Assembly: GCF_006345805.1 (NCBI RefSeq)
Contig: NC_043002.1
Coordinates: 34,844,001-34,908,000 of the forward strand
Reading direction: 5' to 3'
DNA: 64,000 bases
Origin: Octopus sinensis
Lineage: Eukaryota
A model generated the notes under the pieces. The model was not told where the DNA came from, did no database searches, and saw only the letters and a program-made list of their open reading frames with translations. The translations under genes were made by a program, and so were the position numbers. This document shows positions 32,448 through 57,109 of this stretch, piece after piece (position 1 is the stretch's first letter; every line of letters starts with the position of its first letter).

Positions 32448-32947
32448 TCATGTGAGTGGCAGAGTGTTTGGTGCATTGAGTGTAGCTTGAGCAAGAATGT
32501 TGATAGCAGTGAGATCTGCTTCAGTCAGTTCAGTGCCACCACTTGAGGTACACTCAACCTCATATTCAACTTGGTTAGGAGCAATAAAAAACAAAGGTGC
32601 TTCAACACTCTGCTCAACACTTTCAGTGGCTCGTGCTGTCTCGGTTGGGTCCTGTATCTGTTCTTCATTTTGGACAAGTTCAGCAGCAACCCAAGTTTCT
32701 TGTTGATCTGGAGTGACAGCAGCAGTGGCATCAGAAGTAAATACAGAATAGGTATTCGAACCAACAGTTATCTTAAGCTGAGGACATGGCAAGTCAGGCT
32801 TCTTTCGTTTAGGTGCAGGGTATATTTCTCCTGTGTGCTGAGCTGCATGGCTACGTAGATATTCTTTCCGTAAAAAGCGTCGACCACAATGCTGGCACTC
32901 ATAGCGTTTCAAACCCATGTGGGCCTCAATATGGCGCTTCAGACTCC
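32448..32947 (-). CDS. Terminal exon: end of finger 5, finger 6 and acidic tail
   Basis: [40 protein letters not shown]..., stop at 32448-32450. Confidence 0.93.
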
Positions 32948-33926
32948 CTAAAAAGATAAAGAAAAAAATGGCATTTAATGAATAAAATTATTATATCATT
33001 TTAGGTAATTAATTTAAGTAAGCTGATTACAAAACACTTGTGTACACATCATAAAGAGAACAGCGTCCTGGTTACTGTTCACCACTAAATCCTAAAGTTG
33101 ATGGCATCAACTAAACAGACAGAGGCATGCAGAGCACTCTGCCTCTCATGCCAAAAGACAATAACAAATAACTATTTTCTAACTTTTTACTCTATGGCTG
33201 GTATCTAAACATCACAGCTCTTGTTTAACATAAAAATAAATTTAGCAAACTAAACACCTTCCTCTAATTAACTCAATACTTTTAACATATTCTTCATACA
33301 GAAAAAAGGCAGCAGTAGAGAAGATCAAGTATGCTATTACTTACTCATTGCAGTGAACACACGGCTGCATTCTGCACATTTGTAAACTTTAGGAACTGCA
33401 GGATGCTTGGCTTCCATATGTGCATTCAAACGACTATCAGAAGCAAATGGTCGATTGCATATTTCACACTTCCGCATCTGATCCTTGTCTTTTTCATGAA
33501 CTGACATATGAGCTAAAAGAGACTGGGTCCTCGGGAAACCTTTACCACAAACACTGCACCTGCAAATTGGAGGTCAAAGATATTTTCACTATACACAAAT
33601 AGAAAAAAATTGGAAACACTTTAAATGAACTTTTATTGGAAACTCTCAGCAAATATATGGGAGTCAATATTCTATTAGACAAAGTAGCATGCCATGTGTG
33701 AGTGCACATACTATTTTGTATATATACACCAAAATACATGTGATTATACATAAACCACTACAACATCTGAGCAACAGTATATATGTATTAAAATACACCA
33801 CAAGCACTCAGTCCCCTCTGTGGGATGGTTGGTGTTAGGAAAGGCATCCAGCTGTAAAAACCATGCCAAAAACAGACACAGTAGCCTGGAGTAGTCTTCT
33901 ACCTGGCCAGCAGATGTTAAACAAAG

Positions 33927-33958: not shown

Positions 33959-36900
33959 TATATGTGGAAGATTATTACCTCACTTATAAACAGGTGGGGT
34001 TAATGACAGGAAGAGCAACCTGATTTAGAAAACTCTACCTCCGACACACACTCACCTAACCCATGCAAGCATGGAAAAGTAGATGTTAAAATGATGATTA
34101 TATGCACAGTCTACTGAACTGAAAATTACTACCATCCAAGTGCTTCCTTCCTCTATCCTTCACCTGTCACATCCTGCATGTCATATTATACAGGGTCAAG
34201 GAAGGGATGGTTGAAAGGATGTTTATGTTTGCTTACAACTACATAAGCTTCCAAAACAATTAGTCCAAGTGTGGTACATGCTGCCAAGTTATACTTGGTT
34301 GCAAGTGATGGCTCATCATCATCATAATCTAACATTTGTTTTCCATGCTGGCAAACCAGAGAGCCACACTAAGCTCTATTGGTATAGATTTTACTTTGCT
34401 AGGTGGGTCTTCTCAAACACAACATCACCAGTTGTTTCAGTCATTCATCATCATCTCTGTGAAGCTCAGCATCCTAAGGTCATTTCTCACTTTGTCTCAT
34501 GCCTTCCTGGGTCTTCTCTTTCCACAGGTTCCCTCCACATTTAGAGATCAGCATTATTTTTTGTAGCTGCCCTCATCCATACTCATAACATGGCCAATAC
34601 CAGTGCAGTCTTCTCTCTTGCATACTGCAGTTGAGGTCTTTTATACCTAATTTATTTCTCAATACATTTACACTTTGTCATACATGCACATTGACATTGT
34701 TTATCCAGTGGAGCATGCTGACTTCATTTCATTCAAGCTTTCACATGTCCTCTGCAGTCAAAGCCCATGGGGGAAGGAAATGATACAATGGATAGCATAA
34801 CCTTCAAAACAGTATGCTGGCAGAAGAGAAAAGGAAGGGCAGACAGAGAGGGATGGAATGCCTTTTATCAAGCTTGACTGGAAGTTAAACAGCAACAACA
34901 GTTACAACATGCAACAGTCCTGATACAAATTCTACTTACAGATATGGTTTCTCTCCTGTGTGACGTCTCATGTGGATACGAACATATTTCCGTTCAGTAA
35001 ATCGCTTGCCACAGACATCACAACCAAAAGGTTTTTGACCAGAGTGTGTACTCATATGAACTGGCAAAAGAAAAATGAGATCATATCAACACTAAACACT
35101 ACACCACAGCACAATAACATTGTCCTACTGTCATCAAAGTACAATAACACAATTCCATTGTCCTCATAATACAATAATTTTGTACTATTGTCACCATAGT
35201 TCAGTAACATAGTCTCACTGTCACAACTCTGTCAGGATGGTCATGCTTGGAACCTCTTTTATCACAAGAACAACATGCAGCTAAACAATAAATCCACAAA
35301 GGGAGGGATACACATGTCACAAAAATGTATACAGATACACACATTAAAATAAGTGGTATACAACCTACATTATTAGTATACACACACCTTGGAGTTTTAC
35401 AATGAAAAAATTATAGCAATACATATGCATATAGCACTCACCCACCCTGTACAAATCATCATCATCATCATTTAATATCTGTTGTCCATGGGTTGGACAG
35501 TTTGACCAGGGCTAGCAAGCTAGAAGGCTGCACCAGATTCCAGTCTGATTTGGCATGGCCTTTTATTATAGTCCTGGTGTATAGGTGCAGGTGTGGCAAG
35601 TAGTTAATAAGTTTGCTTCTCAACCACATGGTTTCAGGTTCAGCCCCACTGTGTGGCATCTTAAGTTAAGTGTCTTCTACTATAGCTCCAAGCTGATCAA
35701 AGCATTGTGAGTGGATGGAAAGTGAAAGAAATTCATTGTATATGTGTGTGTGTGTGTTTGTGGGGGGCTTGTCTCAACATCATGAGATAGCTGTAAATGA
35801 GTGTTACCATCATATAAGCAAAATCAGTCATTTCTCATATTCTGTGAAAAAATGCCTGGTCATGAATAAATATTATCTGCTTGGAAACAGGTGATGGATG
35901 GTATCAGAAAGGGCATCTGATAGTAGAAGCTTCAATAAACTCCATCCATGCAAGCATTGGAAAAGTGGATGTTAAAATGATGATGATGATAATGAAAGTG
36001 AAAGAAACCCATCATAAGTGTGCATGTGTGTGTGTCCTTATCTTGAAGTATAATAGTTGTAAATAAGTGACATCATTAGACAACTGATATTATTTATTTC
36101 CGATTTTCTATGAAAACATATCTATAATATTACCTTGCTCAGAAATAGGTTAGGGTTAGCAACAGAAAAGGCATCTGACCATAGAAATCTGGTCCAATGA
36201 ATGCTGTTTGACCAATGTAAGCAAGGAAAAATGGACATTAAAATGAAAAGAAAAAAAATTATGTATATACATGTATGTATGTATGTGTGCATGTATATTT
36301 ATTTACATTTGAGTGGCTGGCATTAGGAAGGGCATCCAGCTGTAGAAACTCTGCCAGATCAAGACTGGAACCTGATGCAGCCATCTGGTTTGCCAGTCCT
36401 CAGTCAAATCATCCAACCCATGCTAGCATGGAAAGTGGACGTTAAACGATGATGATTTGCATGTTTCCAAAAATTACTCAGTTACAGGCCATCTGTGGGC
36501 TTGCAACTTAGAAGATGTGTGGAATAAGACATCCATATGCCTTGCTTGAAAAACAAGAAAGAATTATTGAAAAGAAAGGCATCTGGCTGTAAAACAATGC
36601 CTCAATAATAGGTAATAATCGAGCAGAGAAAAAAAAACTAAAGACCAAATGAACATACACACACACTTTACAATATGGGACTGTAGAAAGTCAAACACAA
36701 CTCACAATAAGAGATTTTACACACACACACAAATACACATATGTATGCATATACTTTTTATAACAAGATAAAGAGATATACTCACCTTGCAATGTTACAG
36801 GGCCTCCAAACATTAAGCCACAAATATTACAAGCAAGCTGCTTCTTCCGTTTCATACGCTTCCCTTTAGTTTTCTTTGTTAAAAATGTCTTACTGTCTAC

Positions 36901-39900
36901 CATGGTGGTATTTTCAGTCTGGGTGCCTTCCACTGTTTCTTCAAATTCTTCAGCTTCAGCCAGTTCAATTTCCTTGACAATCTCTTCAGCTTTTGTCATC
37001 TCCACATCACCTTCAACTGTTGACACAATAGTTTCTTGTATCTTGCTCTCTGCTGCATTCTGTCTCCTCTGAATCATTGAAGTTAATGCAGACACATCAT
37101 CAGCTATATGGATGTCATTAACATCAGGTTTTATATTGTCGACAGCATTCTGCACCTCTTCACTCAAGTGATCTTCGACAGTCTTTTCCGGTACATGTAC
37201 AGTAACACTCTTTTGTTGGCGCCGTGAAGTTTGATTTTTAATTGTTTCAATGTTCACCTTCTTTACAATTGTCTTTGGTTGATCCAGTTCCACATCATCG
37301 ACCTCATCAAGATTGTCGCTGTCCTCTGTGTTACAAGCAACCTCATTGTAAGTCTTAACACAAGGTGACAAAACCTCAATTGTTTTACTGGAATCGGTGA
37401 TCTCCTGTGGCAGAATAGCATTGCTCTCTGCTAGAGTTGTTTCTTCTGGTTGTGCTGTTATATTGTCCGGTTCCACAACCTGTACTGCATTTAAGAAGAC
37501 ATCTTCTATATTACTTTCTTCCTGACTGGTCAGTGTCTTTGTTTCAAGCTCCCCTGTTGGAGGTGGGGAAGGACTCTTCACTTTAAGACCAACAGATGTC
37601 AGCACTGTTGCATCTGCCTCTTTTTCACCTTTTAGCTCAACTGTCTGCTCTAAACTCTGAAATAAACAACAATAATTATTAGAGAATCAGAAATAACATT
37701 ACTTGATCTTCCTGATTTATTACAAGAGTCAAAACATAACTGAACTAAATGCTTTAGCTGGTTAGCTAAATAATTCCATGTATTGGTCAATGTCACTATG
37801 AGAACCACAACAGCAAAACACAAAGTAATGTACATGGTTGGTTACATAGATTTTTTACTGCAATTCTTTCTGAAAAGTTTGGAGAAATCATGTTATACTA
37901 TCTTTCAAAGTTATAGTATTGTAGTTTTATGATTTCTGTATGTGATTTTTGCATTATTGTATAACCAAGACATGGTTTTCCAGTTCACCCAAGAGGTCGG
38001 TAAATAGGAATAAAGAACTGATTCAACTCAAAGTATGATAAACAGCATGAAAAACAGACTTAAATGATGATATGTTGTCCGTAATTGTATGCCATAAGGC
38101 TGCTATGTGCATGTGCTTGTGTCTGCAGACATGTATTACATTAACTGGTTGTCTCTGTGAGTGTCTAATAATAAACTACCCAATAACTGTTTATAGAATT
38201 TATTTATCTATTTATAATATTTATGTGTGTATGTGTATATGAATGAATGAATGCATGTATGTTTTGTATGCTTGAATGAATCATTTAGCACATAAAAATG
38301 ATTAGATTTTCATGGGGTAGATAAAAAATTTTGAAGTGAATGTCTGTCTAAATGTAAAGGGTATAACACAAAGGCGGCGAGCTGGCAGAAACGTTAGCGC
38401 GCCGGGCGAAATGCTTAGCAGTATTTCGTCTGCAGTTATGTTGTGAGTTCAAATTCCGCCGAGGTCGACTTTGCCTTTCATCCTTTCAGGGTCAATTAGA
38501 TAAGTACCAGTTATGCACTGGGGTCGAAGTAATCGACTTAATACCTATGTCTGTCCTTGTTTGTCCCCTCTATGTTTAGCCCCCTGTGGGTAATAAAGAA
38601 ATAGGTATAACACATGTGAATTGTGAATACATTATGAAATGGTTGAGGCCATCTACTTACAATGAAAGGACTGATATCCATTTGGAAGAACTCGGCAAAC
38701 TTAGAGAGTTTCTCTTCTTGAGATTTAAGTTTCTTATCTTCAGGGAAGACTCGCGTTAAACAACATTTATCAAGGAATTCTTTCAGATCACGATTCATTC
38801 CAATCCAATAGTAGCTACCATGCAGGAGTTCTTTGGTCCGTTCCACACCACGATGGATACCTGGAGTAAGGAAATGGTTAATTACTGGTTTAACTCTACA
38901 CATTGGATAAGTGGGTATGGTATGTACTCAGTTCACTCTATTCAGTGGATACAAGGTTAAATTATTACATATTAGCAATATGATAATTTTATACTTCACT
39001 CTCTCCAGTTTTGGACAACACACAAAACTGTCAAAGTCACAACATATGCTAGGCCCCACAACCTCTGATTATCATTCCTAGTGACTCTAAATACATAACA
39101 TAGACAATTCTGACTGAAAGAACAATTGTCTGCTTCAGGACCAGAAAATATTTCAGCTCTGATCAAATGCTTCTTATACACAAGCCCAAGTGACCACCTT
39201 TAAAAGAAAACCAACAACTGGCAAAGAGTTCTAGCCCATGGATACATGGTTTCCTCTTCACCTTGTCTAACACTACTACAACCTGGCCATAATAATAAGA
39301 GCCTATGATCCTCTCAACTAATTGATTACATCCCATCTACACTAAAATCTAACCAAACTTCCAACATATTGGCAGCATGTAGCAAAGAAACCAGGACTAC
39401 GTTTTATAGAATTATTTCTCATCAGCTACATTTATTTTAGTTTCAGAGTACACAGCAACAAGGTACATTCACTAGGTACAGTTTGGAAGTACCTGTTTTA
39501 TAGTTTCGTGTAGCTTATTATAGATTACAAAGAGGAGAAATGTACGGCAGGGAATTTCACTCGAAGGTGTATCACTGACAGTTTTATTAGCATTATGATA
39601 AAGGAGAATCAAGTGCACTATTGTTCTTAAATATGATTGTGAAAGGTGGTAGTATAGAAGGGAGAGAACGATGTGTGTGTGTGCGTGCAAGTAATAAAGA
39701 GTCCTCAGGTGAAACGATAGAAGGTCCTAGGGAAGGAGGGGAGTAAAATCTGTAGCAGTAAATGAATGAATGGAATAATGTTTAGATTGAAGAGAGTAGG
39801 GGAGTCAATTTGAGTATTGTTCATACCTAAGACTAATGCAGGATAATTACTACCCAAGTAGCAACCTAAGAACAAGTGAACAAGTTTGGCTCAGTTAAAA

Positions 39901-42900
39901 GGAGATATTTGAGTAGGATCTCATCACATGGATATAAAGTGCAAGTTAGGGAGCTAGTATAATAATCAATTACTAAATCACTGAGTCAACATAGGGAACC
40001 TCTACACATCATTTGATAAGCAAGAAATAGCAGCTACTCCCTCTTAAAATACACCTTACCATTTTAAAAAGAAAGCATATACTGGTTAATGTAGTCCTGT
40101 GTTTTTGCATTATACTTTTAAATAATAAGATCCTTATTGGATCAGAGCTTACCTAGAAATATTATTATCAAACAAGTACCAAATTAAGATTCATGTAAGA
40201 TTTTGGTACTTTATTTCAGTTTTGACTTCAAAGAAGAGCAGGGATTTTTGTCTAAATGAGGAGGTAAGGATAATGCCTGTAATGACATTTGAAAGGACTC
40301 TGACATGGTTTATTTTCAACATGTAAATCAATGTCTGCAGGAATTTCAGAGAATTAACATCCAAGGAAAGGTAAAACAGTAAAGGTGGGAGTAGGGGTGA
40401 CATAAGGATAAAAGTGGTCTTGAGTGGTGAAGGCATTTTTTGAGCATTTGAGAGGGACAACTGCTGTTGTAGTAAAGACAGAAAAGGTAGAGTGAAGAGA
40501 ATTACTTAAATGACCTTCCTTTCAAAGTGGTTTCAGGTGTTTGCACAACAGTAGCAACAGCACTGCCCAGATGCGAGTGCTGCATTCAAATCTCTGGAGG
40601 CTTTTAATTGATTAGCAACAGGTCTGTCATGTGTATAGGAGCAAGTATTATTAGGAAGTGACAACAACTGGTTGTTAATGTACAGGAAGAAAAGTGTGAG
40701 AAAACAACTGAACTTAAGGGGCATATTAGAGTAGATACAGTGTGGGTCAGAGAAAGCTCCCAATCCCAAAAGTGAGAAATGGATAAAGTACATAGATAGG
40801 CAGTTTAGCAAGGCCTACTTTTCTTTAGAAACTCTTCTAATTTGGTTTAATTTAAATTTGTCGATATTTACTTTAAAGAGATACAAGTAAGAGGATAGCT
40901 TTTTTCAGGAAATTGTGGGTGTATGGAAGACCTGGTAGTGTTTCATATGGAATCTGCAAAGAAACAGTAACAGAGAGGAGACGTAGGGAACACAGCAAGA
41001 GACATCACCACCTCCCTCATTTTTTTTTTGTTATTGATCAACAGGTTCTGACTACTCTGGTATTTGAGTTTGGTAAAATCAACATGCTGTTTCAACAGAC
41101 AACTAACCCGTTGGTGCACACCTTCTTTACAGGTATGATTGGATCATGGCTTCTCTATAATGGCTTTGTTGCCCTTTTTCGAGTTTGACATTTAATAATT
41201 TTGGGACCCACACACTCTGACTCCCGACACAGTACACAACACTAACATATTACCTGTTCTAAGAATGTGTGATTCTGTAACAGCATTTTGTTTCTCAGCT
41301 GCTGTCATCAGAACTTTGCGTAAACGACCAATAGTTTGGTTTTCTGTGTAATATAACTGGCCACCATTAACACGATACTTTGGAGATTCTCTGTCAGCAT
41401 AGTCATTTTCCTCAGTGGTTATGTCTGCTGGTTTAGCACCGGTCAAGTGGAACTGTTTGATAATCTCATACAACCTGATTTGGACTTCTTCATTCAATGG
41501 TTCTGGTTCTGCATCAGCCTGACAACAAAGCAGAGCAACAATATTAGACCATGTCTAATGGTACAAGTACAGTAAATGTCAACAGTTACTTTAGACAATC
41601 TAGTTAGAAAAGAATTAATGGTTGATAAGGGTGGAGTGCTACCTACATTCAGAAAAGGATATAAGGTGAATATCAGAAATATTCTACAACTTAGAGAAAT
41701 GCCACACCGCTAGTGTTCAGGACTAATCCCCACTGCTAGTGTGCAGGGTCACTCCACATTACCAGTGTCAAGAGTCACTCTACATGCTAGTGATTATTCA
41801 CTATCAGGTGCCAGTAAGCTTTTGATAAATGCTTATGTTGACTACAGTAAATTGATTGTATAGATGCAGCACATTCAAATGATTATGAAGTACACAGTCA
41901 TGAGGTTCCAAGTTCAATCCCACAATGTGACATCTTGGATAAGTGAATTTAACAAGGCACCAGGTCAACCAAAGCCTTGGAAGTGAAATTGGGTAAAAAG
42001 AGACTGTGTGATAGTCTATAGGATGGATTTCACCAGTAATTTGAAAGGCCTGGCAACCATAACCCATGGCCTCTACATGGGATGTAGCCAGTCCACTTAT
42101 GCATACCTTTCCTTCTTGGGACACAAAACTCTACTTGTGAAGACATGTTGGAGACAAGTGAAAATCGAAATTGATCAACATCAATGGAAATTGCAGCTGT
42201 GATACCAGTGCTGGTGGCACGTAAAAAGCACCATCCGATCGTGGCCGTTTGCCAGCCTCGTCTGGCACCTGTGCCGGTGGCACGTAAAAAGCACCCACTA
42301 CACTCACGGAGTGGTTGGCATTAGGAAGGGCATCCAGCTGTAGAAACATTGCCAGATCAGACTGGGCCTGGTGCAGCCTTCTGGCTTCCCAGACCCCAGT
42401 TGAACCGTCCAACCCACGCTAGCATGGAAAGCGGACGCTAAATGATGATGATGATGATGATGTGTCAAACTAAGTCCACCTGAAAACTACATTAAGGGTA
42501 CACACGTCTGTGGAATACTCAGCCACTTACACACTAACTTAATGATGAATAAATAAGTTAATTGAAGAACTAAATACTTATTGTCAAAACCAATAAAAAT
42601 TAACTAACTCTATTGATGGAGAGAAAGTGAGTGAGAGAGAAAGACTGCTGGAACAAATACATTACCAAAACAGCAAGATGCGGAGAAGAAATACTTACAG
42701 CCTTGACTAAATTCAAGAAACTTTCTTGAGCAGGGTTAGTGTCAGCTTCCGACTTCCTTCGCTCACTGCCATGTTCACAAACAGGACATGTCTTCACTAA
42801 GGCAGCACCATCCATTGTCATACCTTTCCAATAATAATCATTCAAGCGATCTAAAGTCCTTAATCGCCCCAAGTGAGTCCCTAGGAAGAAAAGAAATAAC

Positions 42901-45900
42901 AAGAATATATATTCAAATACAGAAAGAACTATAAAGACCACTACCACCACACAATTGCAATATACTTGGCTCACTACCCACACAAGACAGTTGTACTCTG
43001 CACTCCAGAATACAAAATATATTCCTTGACCACACTGAAGCTCAAACCATAGCTTCACCTGAACTAACTGTAACAACAATAAAAATAACAAGTGATATAT
43101 TATACAATCAACCTATGAAACATACTGATTACTACTCCACTGTTTCAACAGGCTTCTTCTTTACTAAAAGGGATTAGATGAATCTTTTGTTGTACAAAAT
43201 GTCATTACTCACATCAATTTTGTGAATCACAATACCTTGAGATCCAATCCCAGAATTTCCTCCCAGGTCTTCTTTGCCCTATTGTGGTAACTAATACTAC
43301 CAGCACAGTTTATTCTAACCTAGATGCGGTGCATTCACATCACATGTGTATACCAGCAGAGTCATTTCTTGCCAAGTCTCTCTCTCTCTTCCATTCACAC
43401 TGATATCATATAACCAATAAATCACATTTCACTTATTTCTAACTTTCACTTTCAATATCTAACTCGCTACCACATTGTACTACACTCTTACACACTATTA
43501 AGTAATACCGCATTCTTCTACATTCATACACATGTACCACTATCATGTAGTACATTATTCTTGTACATGTATTACCACATTTTTACATGTCTCATTACCA
43601 TGCAGTATCATATTCTTACACATGTTTCATCACTATGTTGTACCACATTCTTACACATAATTCATATAGTTTGCTCTTTCCACTATTAACCCCATCAAGG
43701 TAGAAAGATTTATACATTAATCCTTTTGACATCAACCTGCCTGAAACCGCTTCTGGTTCAGTAATACAAATGTCTTGTTTTCAAAAGTTCTTAATTAAAA
43801 TCTTCTACCAAACCTTAGTCAAAATTTATGTCCCTAACACTAGCTTAAAGACAACTAAGTTATTTTACTAAATTCTTTGTTATATTTAAAATTGATTGAA
43901 AGAAATACAGAGCATCTCAACAGAAATATGGTAACAAAAGGGTTAAAGTCATCTTACCATTTTCCAGCACATGAGCTGCCTTTAAAAGCTTGAAGCGTTC
44001 CAGTTCATCCATCACAATTTTCTTTAGCTTGGAGCCTGATTTATAATACATTTCATCGTCTTGAATGACATAATTCTGAGCCATTTTCCGGATCACTCGT
44101 TTATAGTCATCTTTTATACCAGGAGGGTAACGTTTCTGTTCAATATATAGCTTTAGAGCGAGGTAATAATCATCTAATGGTACCTGCATGAATCACAAGA
44201 AGATGTCTTAGAATATGGAGAGAGAGAGAGAGAGGACCATAATTTGTAAAAGACAAATGCATATGTCTAAATTATTAGAAATTTCTAAAGTTTCTGTTGT
44301 GCTTCAGGTCTGGGCAAGGCTTTCTATATAAGAACAACAGTTACCCATGAAAACTTCTCCCTCTTCATGCCACCAATGTTGTTCAAGCAAGAGCAAGCAT
44401 CAAAACATTTTAACACCAAAGTAGTCATAATGGAACTCAGAACATAAAGAGCCAGGGCAAATACTGCAAAGCACTTGATCTGGTGTTCTACAAAATATGC
44501 CATTCCACTGTCTTTATCAGATATAAGTTCTTCAGACACAATTTTTTCCAGGCTATTGAACAAAAGTATATATTTACAATTTCTATATCTTATACTATGT
44601 TTTGGTTTCTGAATGTTATCAGATGTCTCATTATACATAGTTTCATGCTGGATTCAAACAAGAAACCTTTATTTGTAAACTAGGGGTTATCCTCAAGGCC
44701 ACTGGCTCACATCAGTAATGAGTTACTAATTGGCTGATGAGGAAAGAATGTAACACTGAGTTTGTGTGAAACCACATAAGATGAGAAACAGCAAAGGATG
44801 TAACTGTTACTAGGTCTTCTGAAACAGATATGAGGAAGAAAGAATGATATCCTCAAACTGAAGGCCAAGTCCAAATGTTTCCTATAAAAGAGGATTTCTT
44901 AATTACAGGTAGCCAAAAGTTAGGTTGTGGTGGTAAACCTGGCCATAGCAGCTACAGCTGATTCTAACTCAGAACACAGACAGTAAAAATTCCGCAAGGT
45001 ACCTGGTCAGATACTCTAACAAGTCCACCTGTCTAGACCAGTACTTTATTGATCCAACAAAAATAAGAGAAAACTTCATCTAGATTTAGTGAAAATTTGT
45101 TTCTACTGAATTTTTTGATAATAGATAAATATTTATTATATCAACAAAGTAAACCTAAAAGATAAAGTTTAATTTTAACTAATGTTTCTTTGAAGTTGTG
45201 CATTTGTGTGCGTGCATGCATGTTTGATACCCAATGCACAAAGGAAAAGAAAAGTGTAAATAAGGTTTTCATAATGAAATAAAATTTTTCTAATTGAAAA
45301 AAGTAATCATAAAATTTCAAAATAAAATCTTAATATACACTGAAAATGGTGTGCATTTGCTCAGGTGGTCGAAATGGGATTTGAGTGATGGTCAGTCATA
45401 TGGATACAGACATACTTAGCAAAGGAAAATACAATTCGCACACAAACAAATTCCTGTGCATACCTGCAACTAAAAATTCGATGGAACATTGTCCCAGACA
45501 CTAGGATTTATAATCAAAACAATCTGACCTCTGTGTAAAGTCCTACAAGATGTAAAATCAAAAGGAATATTACTCACATCACGATTTTCTCGTTTCTTTC
45601 GTTTATTGCCTTTCTTGGGTGAATAACGGTTGACAACGTCTAGATAATTCTTCTTGCGTCCACGACGACCAGGTGACATTTCTGAACCTGATAAACACTC
45701 ATCCTCATCAGCAGGGACATTACTAGTGTCGTCTTCTATTGAGGTTTGGGTGGACTGAGAAGATGGTGGTCGCCCACGCTGAGGTTTGACAGGTTTGTCA
45801 TTGGTTGAATACAAAAGTTTCTTTAACTTAACAGAGACAGGTGTGGAGGAAGCTGGAGTGGATGAGGTTTTGTTAGTGACATTATTATTATTATTAGTAG

Positions 45901-48900
45901 TAGTTGTTGTAGTAGTAGTAGTAGTAGTGGTAGTAGCAGTAGTAGTAGTAGTTGTTGTACTGCTTTCTGTTGGAGTATCCAAAATATTTTCAGAATGAAG
46001 CTCATCAGGGTTGACTTCCCCATTTACTTCTGTAGCAGCAACAGGTGCTTGCGATACATTCTCTTCGGCTACTTCTCCTTCTCCAGGGTAATAATACACT
46101 ACAGGTAAATTTTTTTCAGAACTGCTCGGCTGTTCTGATGGGTTTGCCAGCAAACTCTCTGTCAGACCTTTACTTACTTTCATCATCTTTGTTTGAATAG
46201 ATTGAATCTGAGATTCAGACAGATTTGGATCCAAGTCGGATCCAGGCTGACGGAAAGATATACTCAATGGTAGACATGGTTCCCTACAACAGACAGAACA
46301 TCATAAGTGACAGTTATTGATAAAGACAGACAAACACAATGAGGCATACAGACAAGTACACTGAAGATTACAATAACAGACTCTCACCTATGATGTACGA
46401 GGTATACTGGAGTATATTCAGCAATCTGTGGTCGGTTTATTCGATGTGGCATCAACCAAAGATCAAGACTTTCATGCCAGTTGCGAGGATAGGATTTAGC
46501 AAACTTTCTCAGGTCTGCCTCCAGGTCTTTCCACATGCCATCTAAATTTTAATCAATAATACAGCCACAATGAATCACTGTCAAATACATTAGACTAATC
46601 ACTTCAATAAATAGCGAAGAAAAAAAAAAGGGTGATTTTTTTTTTGTATTTTACTTCTTGGGTCCACAGGAAGAGGCAGTATATATGGTATTCACAGGCC
46701 TTCTTAGACCAGTATGACTGAGGCTTTAAACGTTCCTCTTGAACCTTTATAGGTCAACACCTGCAGGAAAAGCATGAGTAGAGGTGACAGTCTAAGAGGG
46801 CTGATGTCCTGAGGAAAATGGACTGAGTATAGTGATTGGTGCCAAGATTTGGACAAAAAAGTGATGACAAGAGAAGATAAGTGGGACAGGAATGCTGGGG
46901 TAGAGACAGCATGAACCCATCAAGCTCCAAGAAGCAGAAGTCATTGCAGTAGTAGTAGTAGTAGAAAAGGTAGAGATAGGAGACAGTGCACCTGTTGGCC
47001 AGGGCATGTCTGTGAGTGATTTTTAACCTAATGAAGAAAATAAATATAAATATTAAAATTAACATACTTGTATCTTGGCAACATCCAAACTTCAAGTCAA
47101 TGGCATGTTCTTTATCAGTGAGTAAATCAAAGCGACCAGCAATCTTTCTACAACTGAATGACTCTTTACGGAATCTCAAGGTTTTCATGACACCATATCT
47201 AAAAAAAAAAAAAAAAAAAAAAATTAAAAACAACCTTCTAAACCAGTGGTTCTGAATTGGACCCACATGACCCTTTCAGATCCATATAAGATTTTGTTAA
47301 AATCTATGAGCAATAAATTGACTATTTTTACAATACACAAAATATTCTAATTTTTTTATACAATTTCTAATATTTAATTATAAAAATATAATTAAGATTT
47401 TTTTTAAAACAATGAATGGATATGTGGGTCTAGTTGAGTAAAATAGGAATCAAAGGGGTCCATAGGCAAAAAAAAGGGTTAAGGACCACCGTTCTAAATG
47501 GTCATCAATAAAAACACTGCATAATCAAAAGCATGTTGTATAACGGGACTGTATAAATAACTGTATGTTGTGTCAGTCATCTTGTCAACCACTAAAAGTA
47601 TTGTCTTTGACAGTCACAGTAATGTGGCCCTTAGATTGAAACTAGGTTTGATACAACTCAAATTTGGTTTCAAAAGATTAAATATATGTGTGTGTGTGTG
47701 TGTGTGCATGTGAGGGCATGCATGCACACACACAGAGAAATTATGAATGTAAATAATAAAACATAGAATAATGTGTTGCCAAAACCTAAGAGTATATTCC
47801 TCAAGTTACATGCCACCAAAAGGATACATATTTCAGGCACACACATGTATATACACTGAATATATATGATTTCTATACCTACTCAAAACACACACCCAGT
47901 ATTCAATACTCAATAAGAAGATCATGTAAACCTCTCACCTTGCAATAAGACTGAGAATAAACTGCAACACCTCCGTTATAGGTACAATTCCATCTTTGTA
48001 CTCAACAAACCGTGCTTCTGGCCACAAAGAATAAACATCTAAACAGAGGATAACTTGCACAGCTGAGCCTCCAGTCACCTTGATAGGACCAATAATATCA
48101 ACCTCCGCCTGGAAGTACATAATCAACGCTTTAACTCTTTATCATTTAAACTGGCCATATTTGGCCCAAATATGCTATATGTTTTATGTTCAGATTAGCC
48201 AGATCTGGCCTCTTATATCTTAATCTTACCATGTCATTCTAAGAATACACAATCACATCATCAAAATCTTAAAACTACAAAGTAATGAATGATTAATTCA
48301 AGACAATGTGACTAAATAAAAATTACATTTCACAGAGTAATCTGAATGCTAAAGGTTAAATAATGTGAAAATTTTCTATTACTGGGAGACAAATCAGCAA
48401 TAACACTAAACTACCAAACTATTTATCCATTTGGACTTAGTTCTGTGCTCTACTAAATCCCATCCTCTACTTTACTTTCCAGTAAAAAGACAGGAAATAA
48501 CAGTATCATGTGGATAGGGCACACACAAGTATGCCTACAAGCTAAAATATCATGCAGGGTATTAGTAATTCAGATTTCACATCCTAAATCATAGTTTAAG
48601 CAACTTTGTATTGAAACAGATGTGACTTTTGGAAATCTAAAGTTACACAAAGTCCACCTAGGTTACTTGTGAAAGTCATCAGTAATCGTTGACCAATTCT
48701 TCCTGTGCCCTTTCTATCATCAAAGCGCAGGCATGGCTGAGTAGTTAAGAAGTTACCTTTGATTCCCTTGAGTGGTATCTTGGGTAAATGTCTTCTACTA
48801 CAGCCTTGTGACTAAAATTTCATAGACAGAAACTGTACAAAAAGTTGTCTTGTGTGTATATATATATATCATCATCATCATCATACCCATTCTCTATGCT

Positions 48901-49872
48901 GGCATGGGCTGGACAGTTTGACCGGAGCTGATAAGGCGAGGGGCCAGACTTGGTTCCATTGTCTGTTCTAGCATGATTTCAATAGCTGGATGCTCTTCCT
49001 AATGCCAACCACTCCATAGAATGAAGGGGATGTTTTTATGTGACAACAGCACCAGTGGCATGGTTTCTACAGCTGGATGCCCTTTCTAACATCAACTACT
49101 CCACAGAGTCTAATGGGTGCTTTTCATGTGGCACAAGTGCTACATATGTGTATGTGTGTGTTTGCTTACATGTCTTTTCACACAATTTTCACTTCGGTAG
49201 CAATATTATTTGTTTATGTCTAATATAAACAATATGTTTGATAGCTAGGTAAATCTGACATGCTGGCGTCATGAAAAGCATTTGGTCAAGATGCATTCAA
49301 CCCATACCTGCACAGAAAAAGCAGACGTAAAAATGATAATGTTGATAAAACGTAACCATTTTAGACAACAATTAGACTGGATATCACTTCTGTCAACCTC
49401 CTCTAACTTTGTGATAGTTGATAAGGGACAATTGTTATCTTGCAAAGAGAGACATGGCCTAACTTTACTGCAGGTACCATTAACTTTTACAGCCAGGCTG
49501 GACAATAAACTGAATTGATCATATATTGTTTAGATCAAGCCCGCCACACCTTTAAAGTCGCTACTATCTGCTCAATTAGGAGTTATTTAAGGCTATTTAA
49601 TGTAAAGATCAATGAGATTACCTTTTGCCAAAAGTGATTGATCACTTCCCCCAAGGTCTCTGGAAATGGTAAAGCTGCCATTAGTTCGGCAACATGTTCT
49701 TCCCTTTCTGATGGTGTTTTGCTGGCAGGAGTGGCAGTAGCTGAGTAGCCACTGCGGTAAGCTTGGCAAACTGGACATTCTTTTATGTAATTGCGGACAG
49801 TTTCAATGGTTTTAGCCAAATAATAATGGTCGCTAAATTCCTTCAATGTCTTGTCATATGTTCTGTGGTTTC
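32448..49872 (-). CDS. GIN1/Ginger-type integrase-derived protein with 3 H2C2 modules, AT-hook-like motifs and 6 C2H2 zinc fingers; 13 exons, 5'-partial
   Basis: Exons (minus) 49872-49622, 48108-47939, 47198-47068, 46541-46388, 46283-45578, 44183-43958, 42880-42699, 41518-41254, 38860-38661, 37656-36786, 35060-34940, 33559-33345, 32947-32448. All GT-AG and phase-consistent; 3992 nt with no internal stop, at least 1330 aa. Confidence 0.9.
33345..33559 (-). CDS. Exon: fingers 3, 4 and start of 5
   Basis: CSVCGKGF...[13 protein letters not shown]...[14 protein letters not shown]. Confidence 0.93.
34310..34790 (-). mobile_element. Degenerate RTE LINE 3' fragment
   Basis: Similar to the RT C-terminus and 3' end of the RTE at 52666-53975. 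Confidence 0.6.
34940..35060 (-). CDS. Exon: end of finger 1 and finger 2
   Basis: [40 protein letters not shown]. Confidence 0.93.
36310..36456 (+). mobile_element. RTE 3'-end-derived repeat
   Basis: TTAGGAAGGGCATCCAGCTGTAGAAAC...GGACGTTAAACGATGATGAT. Confidence 0.85.
36786..37656 (-). CDS. Exon: long acidic linker and start of C2H2 finger 1
   Basis: Open 871 nt ending [25 protein letters not shown]. Confidence 0.9.
38371..38603 (+). mobile_element. Intact tRNA-related SINE with 11-bp target-site duplication
   Basis: TSD GGTATAACACA at 38360-38370 and 38604-38614; B-box-like GAGTTCAAATTCC; A-rich tail. Confidence 0.9.
38661..38860 (-). CDS. Exon: H2C2 module 3, second half
   Basis: [34 protein letters not shown]. 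Confidence 0.88.
41254..41518 (-). CDS. Exon: H2C2 module 3, first half
   Basis: [10 protein letters not shown]...[18 protein letters not shown]. Confidence 0.88.
42160..42461 (+). mobile_element. RTE 3'-end-derived repeat
   Basis: Two GTGGCACGTAAAAAGCACC repeats and a (GAT)n tail. Confidence 0.88.
42699..42880 (-). CDS. Exon: H2C2 module 2, second half
   Basis: [35 protein letters not shown]. Confidence 0.9.
43721..43942 (+). mobile_element. piggyBac-derived MITE with the same termini as the 6721-7796 element
   Basis: TTAA at 43717-43720 and 43943-43946; right end GAAATATGGTAACAAAAGGG versus GAAATATAGTAACGAAAGGG. Confidence 0.8.
43958..44183 (-). CDS. Exon: H2C2 module 2, first half
   Basis: YIEQKRYP...[20 protein letters not shown]...[17 protein letters not shown]. 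Confidence 0.9.
45578..46283 (-). CDS. Exon: disordered region with poly-Thr/Asn, AT-hook-like motifs and a basic NLS-like stretch
   Basis: EPCLP...TTTTTTATTTTTTTTTTTTNNNNN...PQRGRPP...RRGRKK...KKGNKRKKR. Confidence 0.88.
46388..46541 (-). CDS. Exon: integrase core C-terminal helices (not in the supplied ORF track)
   Basis: [34 protein letters not shown]...[10 protein letters not shown]; needed to restore phase between its neighbours. Confidence 0.85.
47068..47198 (-). CDS. Exon: integrase core, degenerate second Asp region
   Basis: [15 protein letters not shown]; poly-T acceptor, GTATGT donor. Confidence 0.85.
47939..48108 (-). CDS. Exon: integrase core, first Asp region
   Basis: AEVDIIGP...[14 protein letters not shown]. 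Confidence 0.9.
48131..48359 (-). mobile_element. TTAA MITE, same family as 10839-11134
   Basis: TTAACTCTTTATCATTTAAA...CTGAATGCTAAAGGTTAA. Confidence 0.8.
49622..49872 (-). CDS. Exon: integrase H2C2 module 1, second half
   Basis: [37 protein letters not shown]...HFWQK. Confidence 0.88.
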
Positions 49873-50426
49873 CTGTCAAAGAAAGTACAAAAAATTCCAT
49901 TAATAATGAATTAGCGAATGATGATTATGATGAAAATAATGACAAAGAGGTGGAGGAGAGCAATAAAAAGCAAATGCCATAAGTCAGACTTCCCATCAAG
50001 CAATGGGAATAACATCAACTGTTGTTAGATTGCAGAGGGCTTACAACTTCAGTAAACCTATCACTGTTAATAGATAATACTTTTACCGAGTTGAAGCTAT
50101 TGAAAGGATACCTGGAGAACATTGTTATAATTTCAGTTCCCATCAGAACTGACTTAGTCATTTATCCTCTTTAAGTAACTAAAGCAATTTACAGAAATGC
50201 ACTGGGGGTTATTTAAGAAATACTCTAAGTCTCTATGCTGCTCAACAAAGACAACACACACAGCATCACATTTATTTTCTCACACTATCATATCAATACA
50301 CAAATTTATAGGTGGGTTTTTCCTCGAGCAGGTAGATAAAGATTAAAGTTAAAATGAAAAGGCAAACCATTTGGCATCACTTGAAAAGACATTTAATTTA
50401 GATCAAGAATATAGATATACAATCTT

Positions 50427-50666
50427 TTACAGCTGTTTCAAGAAGAGTCGAACGTGTAGATCATATTGAGTAAGGATTCCATAGGTTGAGTACTCTGTCT
50501 TCAGAGAGGGAGAAGTCAGAGAGATGTTAAGTCCCCAATCGAGGATATTAGTGTATTCCAGTTTGTCAAGAATGAAGGAAGGGTCAGAGTAAAATAGGAA
50601 TGCATTAGATAGATCCATGATCAAATGAAAATTACGGTTATAAGTAACATCCAATAGTGGCTTCAA
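50427..50666 (-). mobile_element. Possible LINE RT remnant
   Basis: IMDLSNAF...FILDKLE resembles the LDLSKAFD...LLxKL RT motif. Confidence 0.4.
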
Positions 50667-50937
50667 GTGAGAATGTTCAATGATAATTCATGGCGAGGAT
50701 TAGTGAAAGTTACCAGTTCCAGTTTTGAATGGAACTGTTAGTGTATTATTTCACCTATTGTTAAAGCTCCACAGTCAGGCAGGGATTTTGGATCCTACTG
50801 TGCCACACCAGTACATGCTGTCACATACTAGCAGTCAAATCATTACCAGGAAGAATAAAAGGCGAAATTGACTTACACAAGATTTGAACTCAATGTGAAG
50901 ATCTAGACAAAAGACAGGAAAGAAAGCTAAACATAAT

Positions 50938-51310
50938 AGGCACAGGAGTGGCTGTGTGGTAAGTAGCTTCCTTACCAACCACATGGTTCCAGGTTCAGTC
51001 TCACTGCATGACACCTTGGGCAAGTGTCTTTTACTATAGCCTCAGGCTGACCAAAGCCTTCTGAGTGGATTTGGTAGACGGAAACTGAAAGAAGCCCTTA
51101 GGGTGTGTGTTTGTCTCCCCCCCCACCCACCCACACACCATTTCTTGACAACCGATGTTGGTGCATTTATGTCCCCGTAACTTAGCAGTTCAGCAAAAGA
51201 GACCGATAGAATAAGAACTAGGCTTACAAAGAATAAGTCCTGGGACTGATTTGTTCGACTAAAGGCGGTGCTCCAGCATGGTCGCAGTCAAATGACTGAA
51301 AAGAATATAA
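50938..51310 (+). mobile_element. tRNA-derived SINE
   Basis: A-box TGGCTGTGTGG, B-box GGTTCAGTC, conserved tail. Confidence 0.88.
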
Positions 51311-51738
51311 GTATAGCTAGAGTTACTATAAGTAGTCCATTTAGATGACAGAAAGCCAGTATTAGTGCACAAAGACATCAGCTGCATTACAGATGATGCC
51401 AATCTCTCCACAACAAACATCCTAAATGATTGGACAGTGGAGGGAGTGCAACATGTCCAGATACCACTACACCTCAAATGATCACTGCATGTCGGAGTGA
51501 ATAGATGGAGTAAGCCTAGAAAAATAGATCTAATATATATATATATATATATATGAAGCCTCCTAACATACACACACATGGCCAGTCAGAGAGTGACCAG
51601 TGGTTTCACAAGCAACTTTAAATAATTACATTATTGCTCTAATGTTTTAGAGTGTGCTTTTTTTTCAGATTTTAGGTTTTTGAACAACTGCTTTTTTATT
51701 TATTTATATTTATATTATATATATATATATATATATAT

Positions 51739-51896
51739 AGGAGTGGCTGTGTGGTAAGTAGCTTGCTTACGAACCACATGGTTCCTGGTTCAGTCCCACT
51801 GTGTGGCACCTTAGGCAAGTGTCTTCTACTATAGCCTCGGGCTGACCAAAGCTTTATGAGTGGATTTGGTAGACGGAAACTGAAAGAAGCCTGTTG

Positions 51897-51927
<31 letters not shown>

Positions 51928-52147
51928 ATATGTTTGTGTGTCTGTATTTGTCCCGCCAACATTGCTTGACAACCAATGCTGGTGTGTTTACGTCACTGTA
52001 AACTTAGCGGTTCAGCAAAAAGAGACCAATAGAATAAGTACTAGGCTTACAAAGAATAAGTCCTGGGGTCGATTTGCTTGACTAAAGGCGGTGCTCCAGC
52101 ATGGCCACAGTCAAATGACTGAAACAAATAAAAGAGTAAAAAGAGTA
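51739..52147 (+). mobile_element. tRNA-derived SINE
   Basis: A-box, B-box GGTTCAGTCCC, internal (TA)n, tail GGCGGTGCTCCAGCATGGCCACAGTCAAATGACTGAAAC. Confidence 0.9.
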
Positions 52148-52665
52148 TATATATGCACACACAATCATCATTAAGTGTGACTAAGGTGCTAATGCACCTA
52201 CATTGCCTGTTAGCATGTGTGTATGCATATCCGTGCTCTTCCTACAGCATTAAGAATATTTTAATCCTTATTTCTAGCAATGTGTCAGCATCCTTAGTCA
52301 CATTTAGTGATGATTGAATTTTTCCTTTATGGTACCACATTGCACCTAGCTGTTTATATTAAATTTATATATATCATCATCAACATCACTGCTCCATATA
52401 TATATATGGCTGATCATCTATATACCATGGGTTTGCAAAATCAAAACTGACCCAGTGCTGCACAACTATACTAATAATTGTACTTTTACTATATGTGGCT
52501 CACAAACAAGTCAATGAGAGAGCTTCTATGTCAGCATAACATGGACAGAGCTAATGTCCTATTTTCTTATTTTCAGTACCAGCTGTTCAATTTTCTCATT
52601 AGTGTTTCCATAATATCACAGAAAGAGACATTTTAAATATATATATATATATATACATGTATATA

Positions 52666-53975
52666 TCATCATCATCGTTTAATGTCTGTTTTCCATGCTA
52701 GCATGGGTTGGACGGTTTGACCGGGGTCTGGGAAGCCAGGAGGCTGCACCAGGCTCCAGTCTGATCTGGATGCCCTTCCTAACGCCAACGACTCCGTGAG
52801 TGTAGTGGGTGCTTTTTACATGCCACTGGCACAGGTGCCGGGGGAGGCTGGCAACGGCCACAATCAGTTGGTGCTTTTTACGTGCCACCAGCACGGAAGC
52901 CAGTCAAGGCAGTGCTGGTACTGGCCACGTTCGGATGGTGCTTTTTACGTGCCACCAGCACAGGTATCACAACTACAATTTCCATTTGATTTTTATTTGA
53001 TGTTGATGTACTTGACTCAATAGGTCTCCTCAAGCACAGCAGGTTGCCCTACAATCCAAGGTAAGCACAGCAGGTCGTTCTGCGATCCAAGGTACTTTGG
53101 ATGGGCTGGTGCTGCTATGTGAAGCTGGTGCAGGAAACAGCCATGAACTCACGTTGTTGGGTCTTCGCAGTCACAGCATATCTCCAGAGGTCTTGGTCTT
53201 TCGCCATTGCCTCTGTGAGGCCCAACGTTCGAAGGTCATGCTTGACCACCTCATCCCATGTCTTCCTGGGTCTACCTCTATCCCGGATTCCTTCAACTGT
53301 TTGGGAGTGGCACTTCTTCACACATCTCTCCTCATCCATCCGTAGTACATGACCATACTAGCGCAAACGTCTCTCTTGCATGCCACATCCAGTGCTTCTT
53401 ACGTCCAGCATTTCTCTCAGGGTGCTTACACTCTGTTGTGAGTGCACACTGACATTACACATCCAGTGGATCATGCTAGCTTCATTTCTTTCAATCCTAT
53501 GCATGTCCCCTGCAGTCACAGACCATGTTTCAGCGCAAGTCCTCTCTTGCATGCCACCATCCAGTGCTTCTTACGTCCAGCACTTTCTCTCAGGGTGCTA
53601 TCACTTCTGTTGTGAGTGCACACTGACATTACACATCCGTGGGCATGCTTAGCTTCAACATTTCTCTGTTCAATCCTAATGCATGTCCCCTGCAGTCACA
53701 GACCTATGTTTCACTACCGTGACTCGTTGCAGTTCGCACATGTGCGTCGTACAATCTACCTTTCACTCTGAGCGAGAGACCCTTTGTCAGCAGTAGGGGT
53801 AGAAGCTTTCTAAACTTTGCCTAGGCTATTTGTATTCTGGTGGTGACACTGAGCATACACCTCCACTACTAACTTGGTCACCTAGGTAGCGAAAACTATC
53901 AACTACTTCTAGTTTCCACCACTAGAGTGTGATGGAATCTGTTTTCTGAGTATCTGTGGTGTCTATTGCCCCCCT
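52666..53975 (-). mobile_element. 5'-truncated RTE-clade LINE: RT C-terminus, 3' UTR and (GAT)n tail
   Basis: KLEVVDSFRYLGDQVSSG, MHRIERNEASMIHWMCNV, VEGIRDRGRPRKTWDEVVKHDL..LWRYAV; 172-bp internal duplication. Confidence 0.9.
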
Positions 53976-54421
53976 ATATATATACACACACACACAGTAT
54001 AGTTGCTGGATATGGCCAGTCATTAGTTTCACACCTATAATGATGTTCAGAATGGTAAAGGTGACTCGTCAGACTCATTGGCCAGAGGCACGCAACCTCT
54101 CTATAATATGAGGTAGGAATAGTCTCAGTCAGCTAGGGTTGTAAAAAACCCCACAAAACAAAATTCTAGTGAATGACAGCTCTTCTGGACAGGAATTAAC
54201 TCCCTTTGACTGGTTACAGTGCATAGGGGAATTCCGTGTTTGCAACACAATTTTCTTCTGACGAGGGCACTACTTACACAGCTCACATTTGGAGTTTAAG
54301 AAGGCCATTGGGTCAAGCAAATTCTTTAGGAACCTTGCCCTGTCAGCCAAGCAAAGTTTACATCATCCACTCCCATTAAAATAGAGCCCAGGTTGTTCTG
54401 AGAGCTTGCATTTAATTTTCT

Positions 54422-54570
54422 CATGGAGTGGTTGGCGTTAGGAAGGGCATCCAGCTGTAGAAACACTGCCAGATCAGACTGGGCCTGGTGCAGCCTACTG
54501 GCTTCCCAGACCCCAGTTGAACCGTCCAACCCATGCTAGCATGGAAAGCGGACGTTAAACGATGATGATA
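54422..54570 (+). mobile_element. RTE 3'-end-derived repeat
   Basis: Nearly identical to 42308-42461. Confidence 0.88.
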
Positions 54571-55263
54571 CTCTCCTTTTGTAAATGCTATACAACGCTG
54601 GTCAAGGACATAACATTGTGCCTCAATGGGATCCTAAAAGAGGACCTGTGATTGTTTAGACATCACTTGAATTACACAGAATGGCCGAATGGTTAAGAAG
54701 TTTGCTTTGAAACTACAAGGTACCAGGGTCCAACACCACATACATGAGCAATTGTCTCCTTCTATAACTTTGACTTCCCCATCCCTTGTGAGTGAAACTC
54801 AATAGACAGAAACAGTACAGAAGTCTTTCAGATAGATTGTAACTGTACACTTTTGTCACACATTCTATGTCACATTGATTCTGTCTGAAAAGCACATTAA
54901 GGATATGCATATCTGTGGAATACTCAGCCACTTATATGTTAATTCAAAGAGTAGATAATCTAGTTGATCAAGTAACAGAACACTCATTGCTAAAGCTGTG
55001 AGGGAACAAACCATCCATCCATTCACATATTTATACTAGTCTCCATCTACTAAATTCTATCCACAGGGCATTGGAGGTTTAGTGCTGCAAAGTAGGACTG
55101 AACCCAAAGCTATGTTGTTGTAATACAAACTTCTTAACCACATAACTATGCTACTTATTACACAGTGGTACCTTGCACCCCAAACTGTCATCTACTATAA
55201 TTTAACTTGTCATTAGTTAAACAAATTATTAAACCTTGAGAAATTTCTGCGAAATATTTTAAA

Positions 55264-55925: not shown

Positions 55926-56449
55926 ATTACTTTACCTTAACTAAAAAGGCAGTGAAAATATTATGCAGTTTCTCTGTGTAGCTAGTTTCAACCATGCTAT
56001 TATACAAAGACAGCAACAGTTGACATTATCCCAGAATTTACATATTCTCCTCATATATTTTGATTGTTTAATTAAAACTGACTGATGGATGATGAACTAT
56101 ACAGTTTCTGAGCTGTCATAGCTTAAATATACACCATGGTGACTGTCTTTCAAATAGACAGACCTGACAGGTGTTGTGTAAGTAGGGTAGGTTTGGTTGG
56201 CATTTATAATATAGATATGAATTAATGTTAACATATATGTATGTGTAGAGAGCAATAATACTTGGTAGTATATCTGGTGATGGATGTGGAACACAAAGTC
56301 ATGGGTGGTAAGACATATTGATGTCTAAATAAGCCATTCACAATATGAAACCAGATTAATGTCCTGTTTGTAAATGTGTAACTACGTTTATAGCAATACT
56401 AAAACATCAATGGTATTGAAGTTCACAAGCTATTAACACTGCTTTGGTG

Positions 56450-56990: not shown

Positions 56991-57109
56991 TTGTTACAGA
57001 AGATGGTAGAAAATGGCTGACTGCTGTACAATTCTGTTGTGACCCTTATGTTTTCAGTCCAAATCATTAAAATAAGAAAATCAATAATACCATACTGCAA
57101 AGCTGTTCC

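Follow-up and report, generated by a model that had tools for sequence, protein, structure and literature searches.

The 64,000-nucleotide (nt) stretch of the Octopus sinensis genome analyzed here (NCBI RefSeq assembly GCF_006345805.1, contig NC_043002.1, positions 34,844,001 to 34,908,000; referred to as the window) holds 13 exons of one intact minus-strand gene that has at least 14. In order, the encoded protein carries an integrase N-terminal zinc-finger module (module 1), a dead integrase core, a disordered segment, two further N-terminal modules (modules 2 and 3), a second disordered segment, about six C2H2 zinc fingers, and a C-terminal motif. Most probably the gene works like, and is, a domesticated Ginger1-type integrase gene. 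A dead Ginger1/GIN-type core joined to three N-terminal modules and a C2H2 array is a combination undescribed in the literature we searched, which also yielded no description of this mollusc gene family. The explanation we favor, and hold to be reasonably probable as a whole, is that the extra modules of this dead integrase gene arose in an early mollusc through copying of an exon pair or of tandem gene copies and that its product would serve in assembly or nucleic acid contact.

The window is AT-rich (G+C of about 36%), with abundant interspersed repeats and microsatellites. Rebuilding the gene exon by exon from position 49872 down to 32448 (minus strand; all positions are those of the window) gave introns that are all GT-AG and exons with compatible phases, with no internal stop before the TGA at 32450-32448 (Table 1). 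The assembled protein comprises 1,330 residues and lacks its N terminus. The gene's start codon and promoter, together with the first half of module 1, lie beyond the end of the window. We did not find the first exon of module 1 in 49873-64000 among open segments, by a scan for phase-1 donors following a His codon, or by running a hidden Markov model (HMM) of the orthologs against the six-frame translation; the first intron is therefore longer than 14 kilobases. The part of this intron within 49873-64000 consists mostly of repeats. The coordinates, phases, and exon-pair sizes that an initial annotation, made from the letters of the window, had given for the modules were all exact when we read the splice sites again.

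All three modules match the Pfam family Integrase_H2C2 (PF17921; curated cutoff of 25.5 bits), with 48.6 bits for module 2, 39.1 bits for module 3, and 31.9 bits for the second half of module 1, and the assembled protein matches it in three stretches with 91.8 bits in total. The His, His, Cys-x2-Cys pattern is complete in module 2. In module 1 the second His and CPVC are visible, and its first His, which falls outside the window, is present in all orthologs. Modules 1 and 2 keep all H..H..CxxC ligands without change in the nine species compared, except that the window sequence does not extend to the first His of module 1. Module 3 is a noncanonical H2C2 finger in which the two His residues are followed by an adjacent Cys pair (SH-x5-G-I-H...KCCLTR), not CxxC. 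This arrangement is kept in the window sequence, in four gastropods, and in a unionid; scallop module 3 has lost the Cys pair and the second His, so that only the first His is left of the ligands, and it retains the YPYY half. A YPYY region lies upstream of the His-His-Cys-Cys (HHCC) finger in every module, as read from the orthologs for module 1. This motif is a known region of Ginger1 and Gypsy integrases (PMC2836005), and the modules align over their full length with the YPYY and H2C2 alignment of Bao et al., module 2 reading RYPPG...EMYY. A profile of the module also matches the N-terminal domain of the prototype foamy virus (PFV) integrase (E = 2e-8) and the Ty3 integrase in structure 7Q5B (E = 4e-8). 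These profile matches identify each module as an integrase N-terminal HHCC domain plus the region upstream of it, equivalent to the N-terminal extension and HHCC domain in the integrases of spumaretroviruses and Ty3.

Modules 2 and 3 are each encoded by a pair of exons with phase 0 at both ends (226 + 182 = 408 nt and 265 + 200 = 465 nt, respectively), and the flanking exon ends at 45578 and 37656 are both in phase 0 as well. Inside each pair, a phase-1 intron splits a Gly codon two residues ahead of the second His: the boundaries (marked by slashes) read GAA AAT G/gtaaga...cctag/GG ACT CAC in module 2, giving ENG/TH, and AGA ACA G/gtaata...ccag/GT ATC CAT in module 3, giving RTG/IH. The initial annotation had placed the same phase-1 intron in all three copies. 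Both sides of it can be read in modules 2 and 3, and module 1 displays only the acceptor half: the exon starting at 49872 is preceded by a pyrimidine tract and AG, and its first two bases complete a codon that is followed by Asn and His. The first base of that codon lies in the exon outside the window, and we infer that it encodes Gly because Gly occupies the position in all eight orthologs. By our own estimate, made without computation, it is unlikely that three introns would come to share one homologous nucleotide and one phase by chance.

The gene has orthologs in eight other mollusc species, which align colinearly with it from module 1 through the C-terminal motif; in the orthologs, module 1, and hence YPYY and H2C2, lies directly N-terminal to the integrase core. 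We queried 1.84 billion representative proteins exhaustively with HMMER, using the 75 residues encoded by the first exon of module 2, and obtained 37 proteins. The best match is an exon-sized open reading frame (ORF) that is 85% identical; the similarity stops at ...HVLENG and the ORF continues with KRK because the GTAAG donor is read through. The next matches are full-length proteins of 1,360 to 1,559 amino acids from six molluscs (Sinanodonta woodiana, Haliotis asinina, Patella vulgata, Pecten maximus, Lymnaea stagnalis, and Babylonia areolata), all annotated as "uncharacterized" or "hypothetical" and matched in two stretches in Pecten and three in the other five. Further relatives are Bulinus and Nucella gene models and three more scallop proteins, and one scallop fragment is annotated as "Gypsy retrotransposon integrase-like protein 1." No match came from a word-indexed protein search with a composite of exons (591 amino acids) because the orthologs, at about 30 to 35% identity, have too few exact words in common with it.

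Mapping the Pecten protein exactly onto its own genomic locus revealed the same exon structure. Pecten exon 1 (280 nt) encodes module 1 and ends in phase 1 within Gly (...AHVDSK/G-VH); exons 7 and 8 (229 + 173 nt, 402 nt together) encode module 2 with phases 0-1-0 and the junction E/G-NH; and exons 9 and 10 (235 + 182 nt, 417 nt together) encode module 3, again with phases 0-1-0 and with the junction T/G-AV. All other shared junctions are identical in phase between Pecten and the window, and two C2H2 exons are equal in length (121 and 215 nt). Positions 19055-19106 of the Pecten locus are annotated as a 52-nt "intron" within a stretch that one long exon covers in the window; this is probably an annotation patch over a frame problem. 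In other assemblies, the similarity of nine exon-sized ORFs ends 4 to 6 residues past the first His, and nine transposon-like ORFs read straight through the finger with no break. The Bulinus model breaks at the module 3 intron, and the Nucella model begins just past the module 1 intron.

Differing intron positions among orthologs had been named beforehand as evidence that would speak against a common history of the modules; the scallop introns are the same in all three. Because the scallop shares all three module introns and their phases, the triplication predates the cephalopod/bivalve split. The three-module architecture was therefore already fixed when cephalopods, gastropods, and bivalves diverged from an early mollusc ancestor. 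The gene is not lineage specific, and the triplication is ancient and no peculiarity of this genome. A contrary reading, to which we give practically no credence, is that the modules are intronic transposon remnants, or separate genes or pseudogenes that only seem to join. The window is indeed repeat-rich, with a family resembling short interspersed elements (SINEs) and helicase remnants, and the integrase core is catalytically dead. However, the available evidence already contradicts this reading: 13 consecutive canonical junctions match in phase with no stop, full-length colinear proteins exist in eight other mollusc species, the scallop exon structure is identical, and the zinc ligands of modules 1 and 2 are invariant.

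The three exons between modules 1 and 2 align over their whole length with the catalytic cores of Ginger1 transposases and GIN proteins. In all nine mollusc sequences, other residues stand in place of the Glu and the second Asp of the Asp-Asp-Glu (DDE) triad; the first Asp survives in the window sequence alone (EVDIIGP). With the triad lost in all nine species, DNA cutting and joining would not be expected of the product. In a neighbor-joining tree of the core (a distance method applied to 156 columns, with three Gypsy sequences as the only outgroup), the mollusc cores form one clade with 100% support, and a split of equal support (100%) separates them and the Ginger1/GIN sequences from Gypsy. 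In 54% of bootstraps they join vertebrate GIN2; either shared ancestry or the mutual attraction of two degenerate cores that evolve fast may account for this. The Pfam rve family remains below its cutoff (20.9 bits in Haliotis). A GPY/F motif was looked for by pattern search only, and no GP[YFLW] follows the core in the window protein or the orthologs except for a GPL in Argopecten (residue 1215), which is the sole downstream match and lies within the C-terminal tail; elsewhere, the pattern matched only the D-x-x-GP site within the core.

Six C2H2 fingers are visible by eye in the exons spanning 36786-32448, and the assembled protein exceeds the cutoffs of zf-C2H2 (68.2 bits, five stretches) and zf-C2H2_4 (68.6 bits). 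The C-terminal motif, VEYEVEC...INILAQAT, is conserved in all mollusc orthologs (consensus VQYEVEC...DL.AI.LLAQAS) and matched no Pfam family. Within the first disordered exon, a poly-Thr/Asn tract of 26 residues (45881-45964, minus strand) is absent from the orthologs and looks like a coding microsatellite.

Table 1. Exons of the integrase-derived gene within the window, in order of transcription (slashes mark splice boundaries)
Feature	Position	Strand	Phases and remarks
Module 1, second exon	49622-49872	-	Phase 1 start (/GA AAC CAC = (G)NH); second His, CPVCQ, linker to ...HFWQK; phase 0 end
Integrase core exon A (AEVDIIGP...)	47939-48108	-	Phase 0 to 2
Integrase core exon B	47068-47198	-	Phase 2 to 1; second catalytic Asp replaced
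Integrase core exon C (...YLVHHR)	46388-46541	-	Phase 1 to 2; catalytic Glu lost
Disordered exon with poly-Thr/Asn tract and basic runs resembling nuclear localization signals	45578-46283	-	Phase 0 end at 45578
Module 2, first exon (YPYY region, first His, ...AAHVLEN G/)	43958-44183	-	Phase 0 to 1
Module 2, second exon (/G THLGR...CPVCEH...)	42699-42880	-	Phase 1 to 0; Integrase_H2C2
Module 3, first exon (YPYY-like region, first His, ...SHILRT G/)	41254-41518	-	Phase 0 to 1
Module 3, second exon (/G IHRG...KCCLTR...)	38661-38860	-	Phase 1 to 0; Integrase_H2C2; Cys-Cys replaces CxxC
Long acidic disordered exon; 3' end is first half of C2H2 finger 1	36786-37656	-	Phase 0 to 1
C2H2 exon, 121 nt	34940-35060	-	Phase 1 to 2; length equal in scallop
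C2H2 exon, 215 nt	33345-33559	-	Phase 2 to 1; length equal in scallop
Last exon: final C2H2 finger, tail, C-terminal motif, TGA	32448-32947	-	Motif at 32481-32570

The extra modules probably arose through copying at the DNA level, either of the exon pair or of the gene in tandem, with later fusion of the copies and loss of their cores. The copied unit would have extended from just before the YPYY helix to about the phase-0 intron ahead of the core, and the phase-1 intron would already have been present when it was duplicated. The identical intron, the phase-0 ends, and the lack of robust grouping with different transposon families all support the copying of a single exon-pair unit. The modules end in phase 0 at 24 to 35 residues after the Cys pair; in a linker of Ginger1 length, the phase-0 intron preceding the core would lie about as far from that pair. 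Of the regions that follow the Cys pair, only that of module 3 has a weak aromatic motif. An HMM built from the first halves of module 1 in the orthologs recovered the first exons of modules 2 and 3 from the window (E = 1.5e-11 and 3.7e-7, respectively) and matched nothing else in its six-frame translation. Between the DNA of the module regions we found no similarity except a shared interspersed repeat. We then compared module profiles from nine species with hhalign: module 1 scored 172 with module 3 and 153.5 with module 2, and modules 2 and 3 scored 145.7 with each other. The best outside partners of modules 1, 2, and 3 reached 146, 127, and 141, respectively, and Gypsy reached 61, 45, and 53. 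The three modules are each other's best partners, by small margins, which favors duplication within the locus.

Several points weigh against the explanation that we favor. The small hhalign margins could reflect profile depth. When scored as a single sequence, module 2 of the window is closer to Ciona_2 and Hydra Ginger1-12 than to modules 1 and 3. Neighbor-joining trees of the modules recovered a module 1 clade in 44% and a module 2 clade in 31% of bootstraps, with module 3 scattered, and united all three modules as one clade in 1.5%. A simple tandem duplication of exons does not account for the layout, in which module 1 is separated from modules 2 and 3. If one of the introns conserved in Ginger1-5-like transposons and the GIN genes coincides with the module intron, the shared intron would be uninformative on duplication inside the gene. 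The functional part of the explanation is inferred entirely, and an AlphaFold2 model of the Mizuhopecten protein, from a four-sequence alignment, had a mean pLDDT (predicted local distance difference test) of 39 and was not used. Module 3 appears to be fast evolving, and we regard single-sequence rankings and trees as uninformative on the origin of the modules.

The module 2 scores and the 1.5% bootstrap value would also suit a history of independent captures, which we consider unlikely. Under this scenario, three different copies of an intron-bearing Ginger1-5-like element landed at or near this locus in an early molluscan ancestor, the N-terminal exon pair of each was exonized separately, only the first copy kept its core, and the phase-1 intron was inherited from the transposon family. 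Three intron positions are conserved among Ginger1-5_HM, Gin-1, Gin-2, and Ciona genes, and the first of them is also found in Ginger1-6, -7, and -8_HM (Bao et al., PMC2836005). In a single neighbor-joining topology, the three modules fall on one side with Ginger1-5 to -8, GIN1, GIN2, and Ciona, and Ginger1-1 to -4 and -9 to -12 make up the other side. Nevertheless, the modules are reciprocal best partners in the profile comparison, and the trees grouped no module robustly with a distinct transposon family, the outcome that had been set out at the start as the mark of separate captures. Three exonizations with comparable ends, all in phase 0, would be less parsimonious than copying, and the coincidence of the Ginger1/GIN intron position with that of the modules, on which the scenario is premised, remains an assumption. 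A metagenome scan for GIN1 genomic DNA gave one unrelated core match (32%). The initial annotation had proposed duplication inside the gene after intron gain: the homologous modules and their common intron agree with the duplication, and the intron, if it is one of those conserved in Ginger1 and the GIN genes, would have been inherited from the transposon.

More speculatively, the YPYY and HHCC exon pair with its phase-1 intron could be a reusable Ginger1-derived cassette that was shuffled into unrelated animal genes and that forms an intasome-like assembly in molluscs, which we regard as quite unlikely. If true, its hosts would include the mollusc integrase/C2H2 gene, teleost proteins with THAP and D-Tyr-tRNA deacylase domains, and sea-urchin C2H2 proteins; three cassettes and a dead core would then rebuild a noncatalytic intasome-like assembly that bridges or pairs the DNA sites read by the C2H2 fingers.

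In retroviral and Ty3 intasomes, the N-terminal extension and HHCC domain bind zinc and contact DNA and the core of a partner subunit. By analogy, the HHCC modules and dead core of the mollusc protein would serve as zinc-dependent units of assembly or nucleic acid contact, like intasome N-terminal domains, and the C2H2 array would confer sequence-specific DNA binding. The product is most likely a nuclear, sequence-specific DNA-binding protein with integrase-derived parts for assembly or contact, a view that the C2H2 array and the basic runs fit. A role of the modules in oligomerization, by analogy with the retroviral integrase N-terminal domain, is plausible.

The symmetric exon pairs also raise the question of isoforms. 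Junctions from 45578 to 41518, from 42699 to 37656, and from 45578 to 37656 had been proposed for transcripts that skip one or both pairs, and all of them would indeed stay in frame, given the phase-0 flanking ends and pairs of 408 and 465 nt. The pairs might then be regulated cassettes, their phase-0 symmetry being kept for alternative skipping that yields isoforms differing in module number (one, two, or three) and in how they assemble, and the symmetry is conserved in the scallop pairs of 402 and 417 nt. We nonetheless think such regulation very unlikely. Any exon pair inserted in frame must be symmetric, which leaves nothing further to explain; the splice sites are ordinary (GTAAGA, GTAAGT, and GTAATA donors with pyrimidine-rich acceptors); the RefSeq isoforms listed for Haliotis and Patella differ by one or two residues and by no module; and all three modules are present in every full-length ortholog retrieved.

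Elsewhere in the window, a SINE-like interspersed repeat occurs on both strands at 42131-42412 and at least ten other sites (e.g., 10149-10362, 52708-52894, 54420-54529, 36311-36416, and 48961-49134), with several copies in introns of the gene. ORF fragments that recur with the same 13 protein letters are this repeat in translation. The ORF at 430-795 (minus strand) contains a Pif1 helicase 2B domain (57 bits) and is most likely a remnant of a Helitron-type helicase. On the plus strand, an exon at 16982-17353 matches the SAC3/GANP family (34.5 bits), and a Gln/Pro-rich, putatively coding ORF lies upstream of it at 2441-2824; together they perhaps belong to a neighboring gene that is transcribed toward the integrase/zinc-finger gene in convergent orientation.

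Vertebrates have well-documented domesticated integrase genes (GIN1, GIN2, KRBA2, and NYNRIN). In invertebrates, the only documented example that we found in the literature searched is Imagin of crustaceans. The locus described here adds a gene conserved across the three classes sampled (Cephalopoda, Gastropoda, and Bivalvia), with an exon structure kept since before these classes diverged. It offers a clean, datable example of exon-pair multiplication and a natural test of what an integrase N-terminal domain does, in assembly or nucleic acid contact, once catalysis has been lost.

The closest known counterparts, GIN1 and GIN2, share with the mollusc gene a YPYY region and HHCC finger followed by a Ginger1-type core (PMC2836005, PMC3424704), and they too are multiexon, nonmobile host genes conserved over hundreds of millions of years. 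GIN2 is also without the DDE triad. They differ in that each has one N-terminal module, no C2H2 array, and a retained GPY/F (PMC2836005, PMC3424704), whereas the mollusc gene encodes three modules, about six C2H2 fingers, long disordered segments, and its own C-terminal motif, with no GPY/F; GIN1 and GIN2 are found in vertebrates and the present gene in molluscs. Imagin, from malacostracan crustaceans (PMC12863088), resembles the mollusc gene in being an invertebrate, Ginger1-derived, multiexon gene with a disordered region, in keeping YPYY and H2C2 while losing the DDE triad, and in its ancient domestication, which is dated to the Cambrian-Ordovician (PMC12863088) and is independent of GIN1 in the authors' tree (Hao et al. 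2026, PMC12863088). In contrast, Imagin has one module, no zinc-finger array, and three exons, and its product is reported to be a cytosolic oocyte protein (PMC12863088). Extra modules, the C2H2 array, and the loss of GPY/F set the mollusc gene apart from GIN1, GIN2, and Imagin. KRBA2, SCAND3/ZBED9, and NYNRIN likewise fuse an integrase-derived domain to host regulatory or DNA-binding domains, but they stem from Ginger2 (PMC3575427) or endogenous retrovirus lineages, their partner domains are KRAB, SCAN, or NYN, and their N-terminal module is not repeated.

The initial annotation had called free-standing repeats of the module unusual, which overstates the case: a Pfam scan found two THAP domains, three H2C2 domains, and a D-Tyr-tRNA deacylase domain in an Engraulis protein (XP_063039816.1; similar proteins were retrieved from Kryptolebias and Salminus, the teleost domains being those of the Engraulis scan), four H2C2 domains and a C2H2 array in a protein of the sea urchin Lytechinus (XP_054765160.2), and the order H2C2-rve-H2C2 in a mantis shrimp protein (XP_076065010.1). 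No description of these multimodule proteins was found in the literature searched. Like the mollusc protein, they carry several free-standing copies of YPYY and H2C2 in one host protein; unlike it, they have other partner domains and are not colinear with the mollusc gene. Among active enzymes, the integrases of PFV (3OYI and 3L2Q) and Ty3 (7Q5B) have N-terminal domains that match the module profile by sequence. Each of these enzymes has one copy of the domain, whereas the mollusc gene has arranged three around a dead core, two of them free-standing and one with an altered Cys pair.

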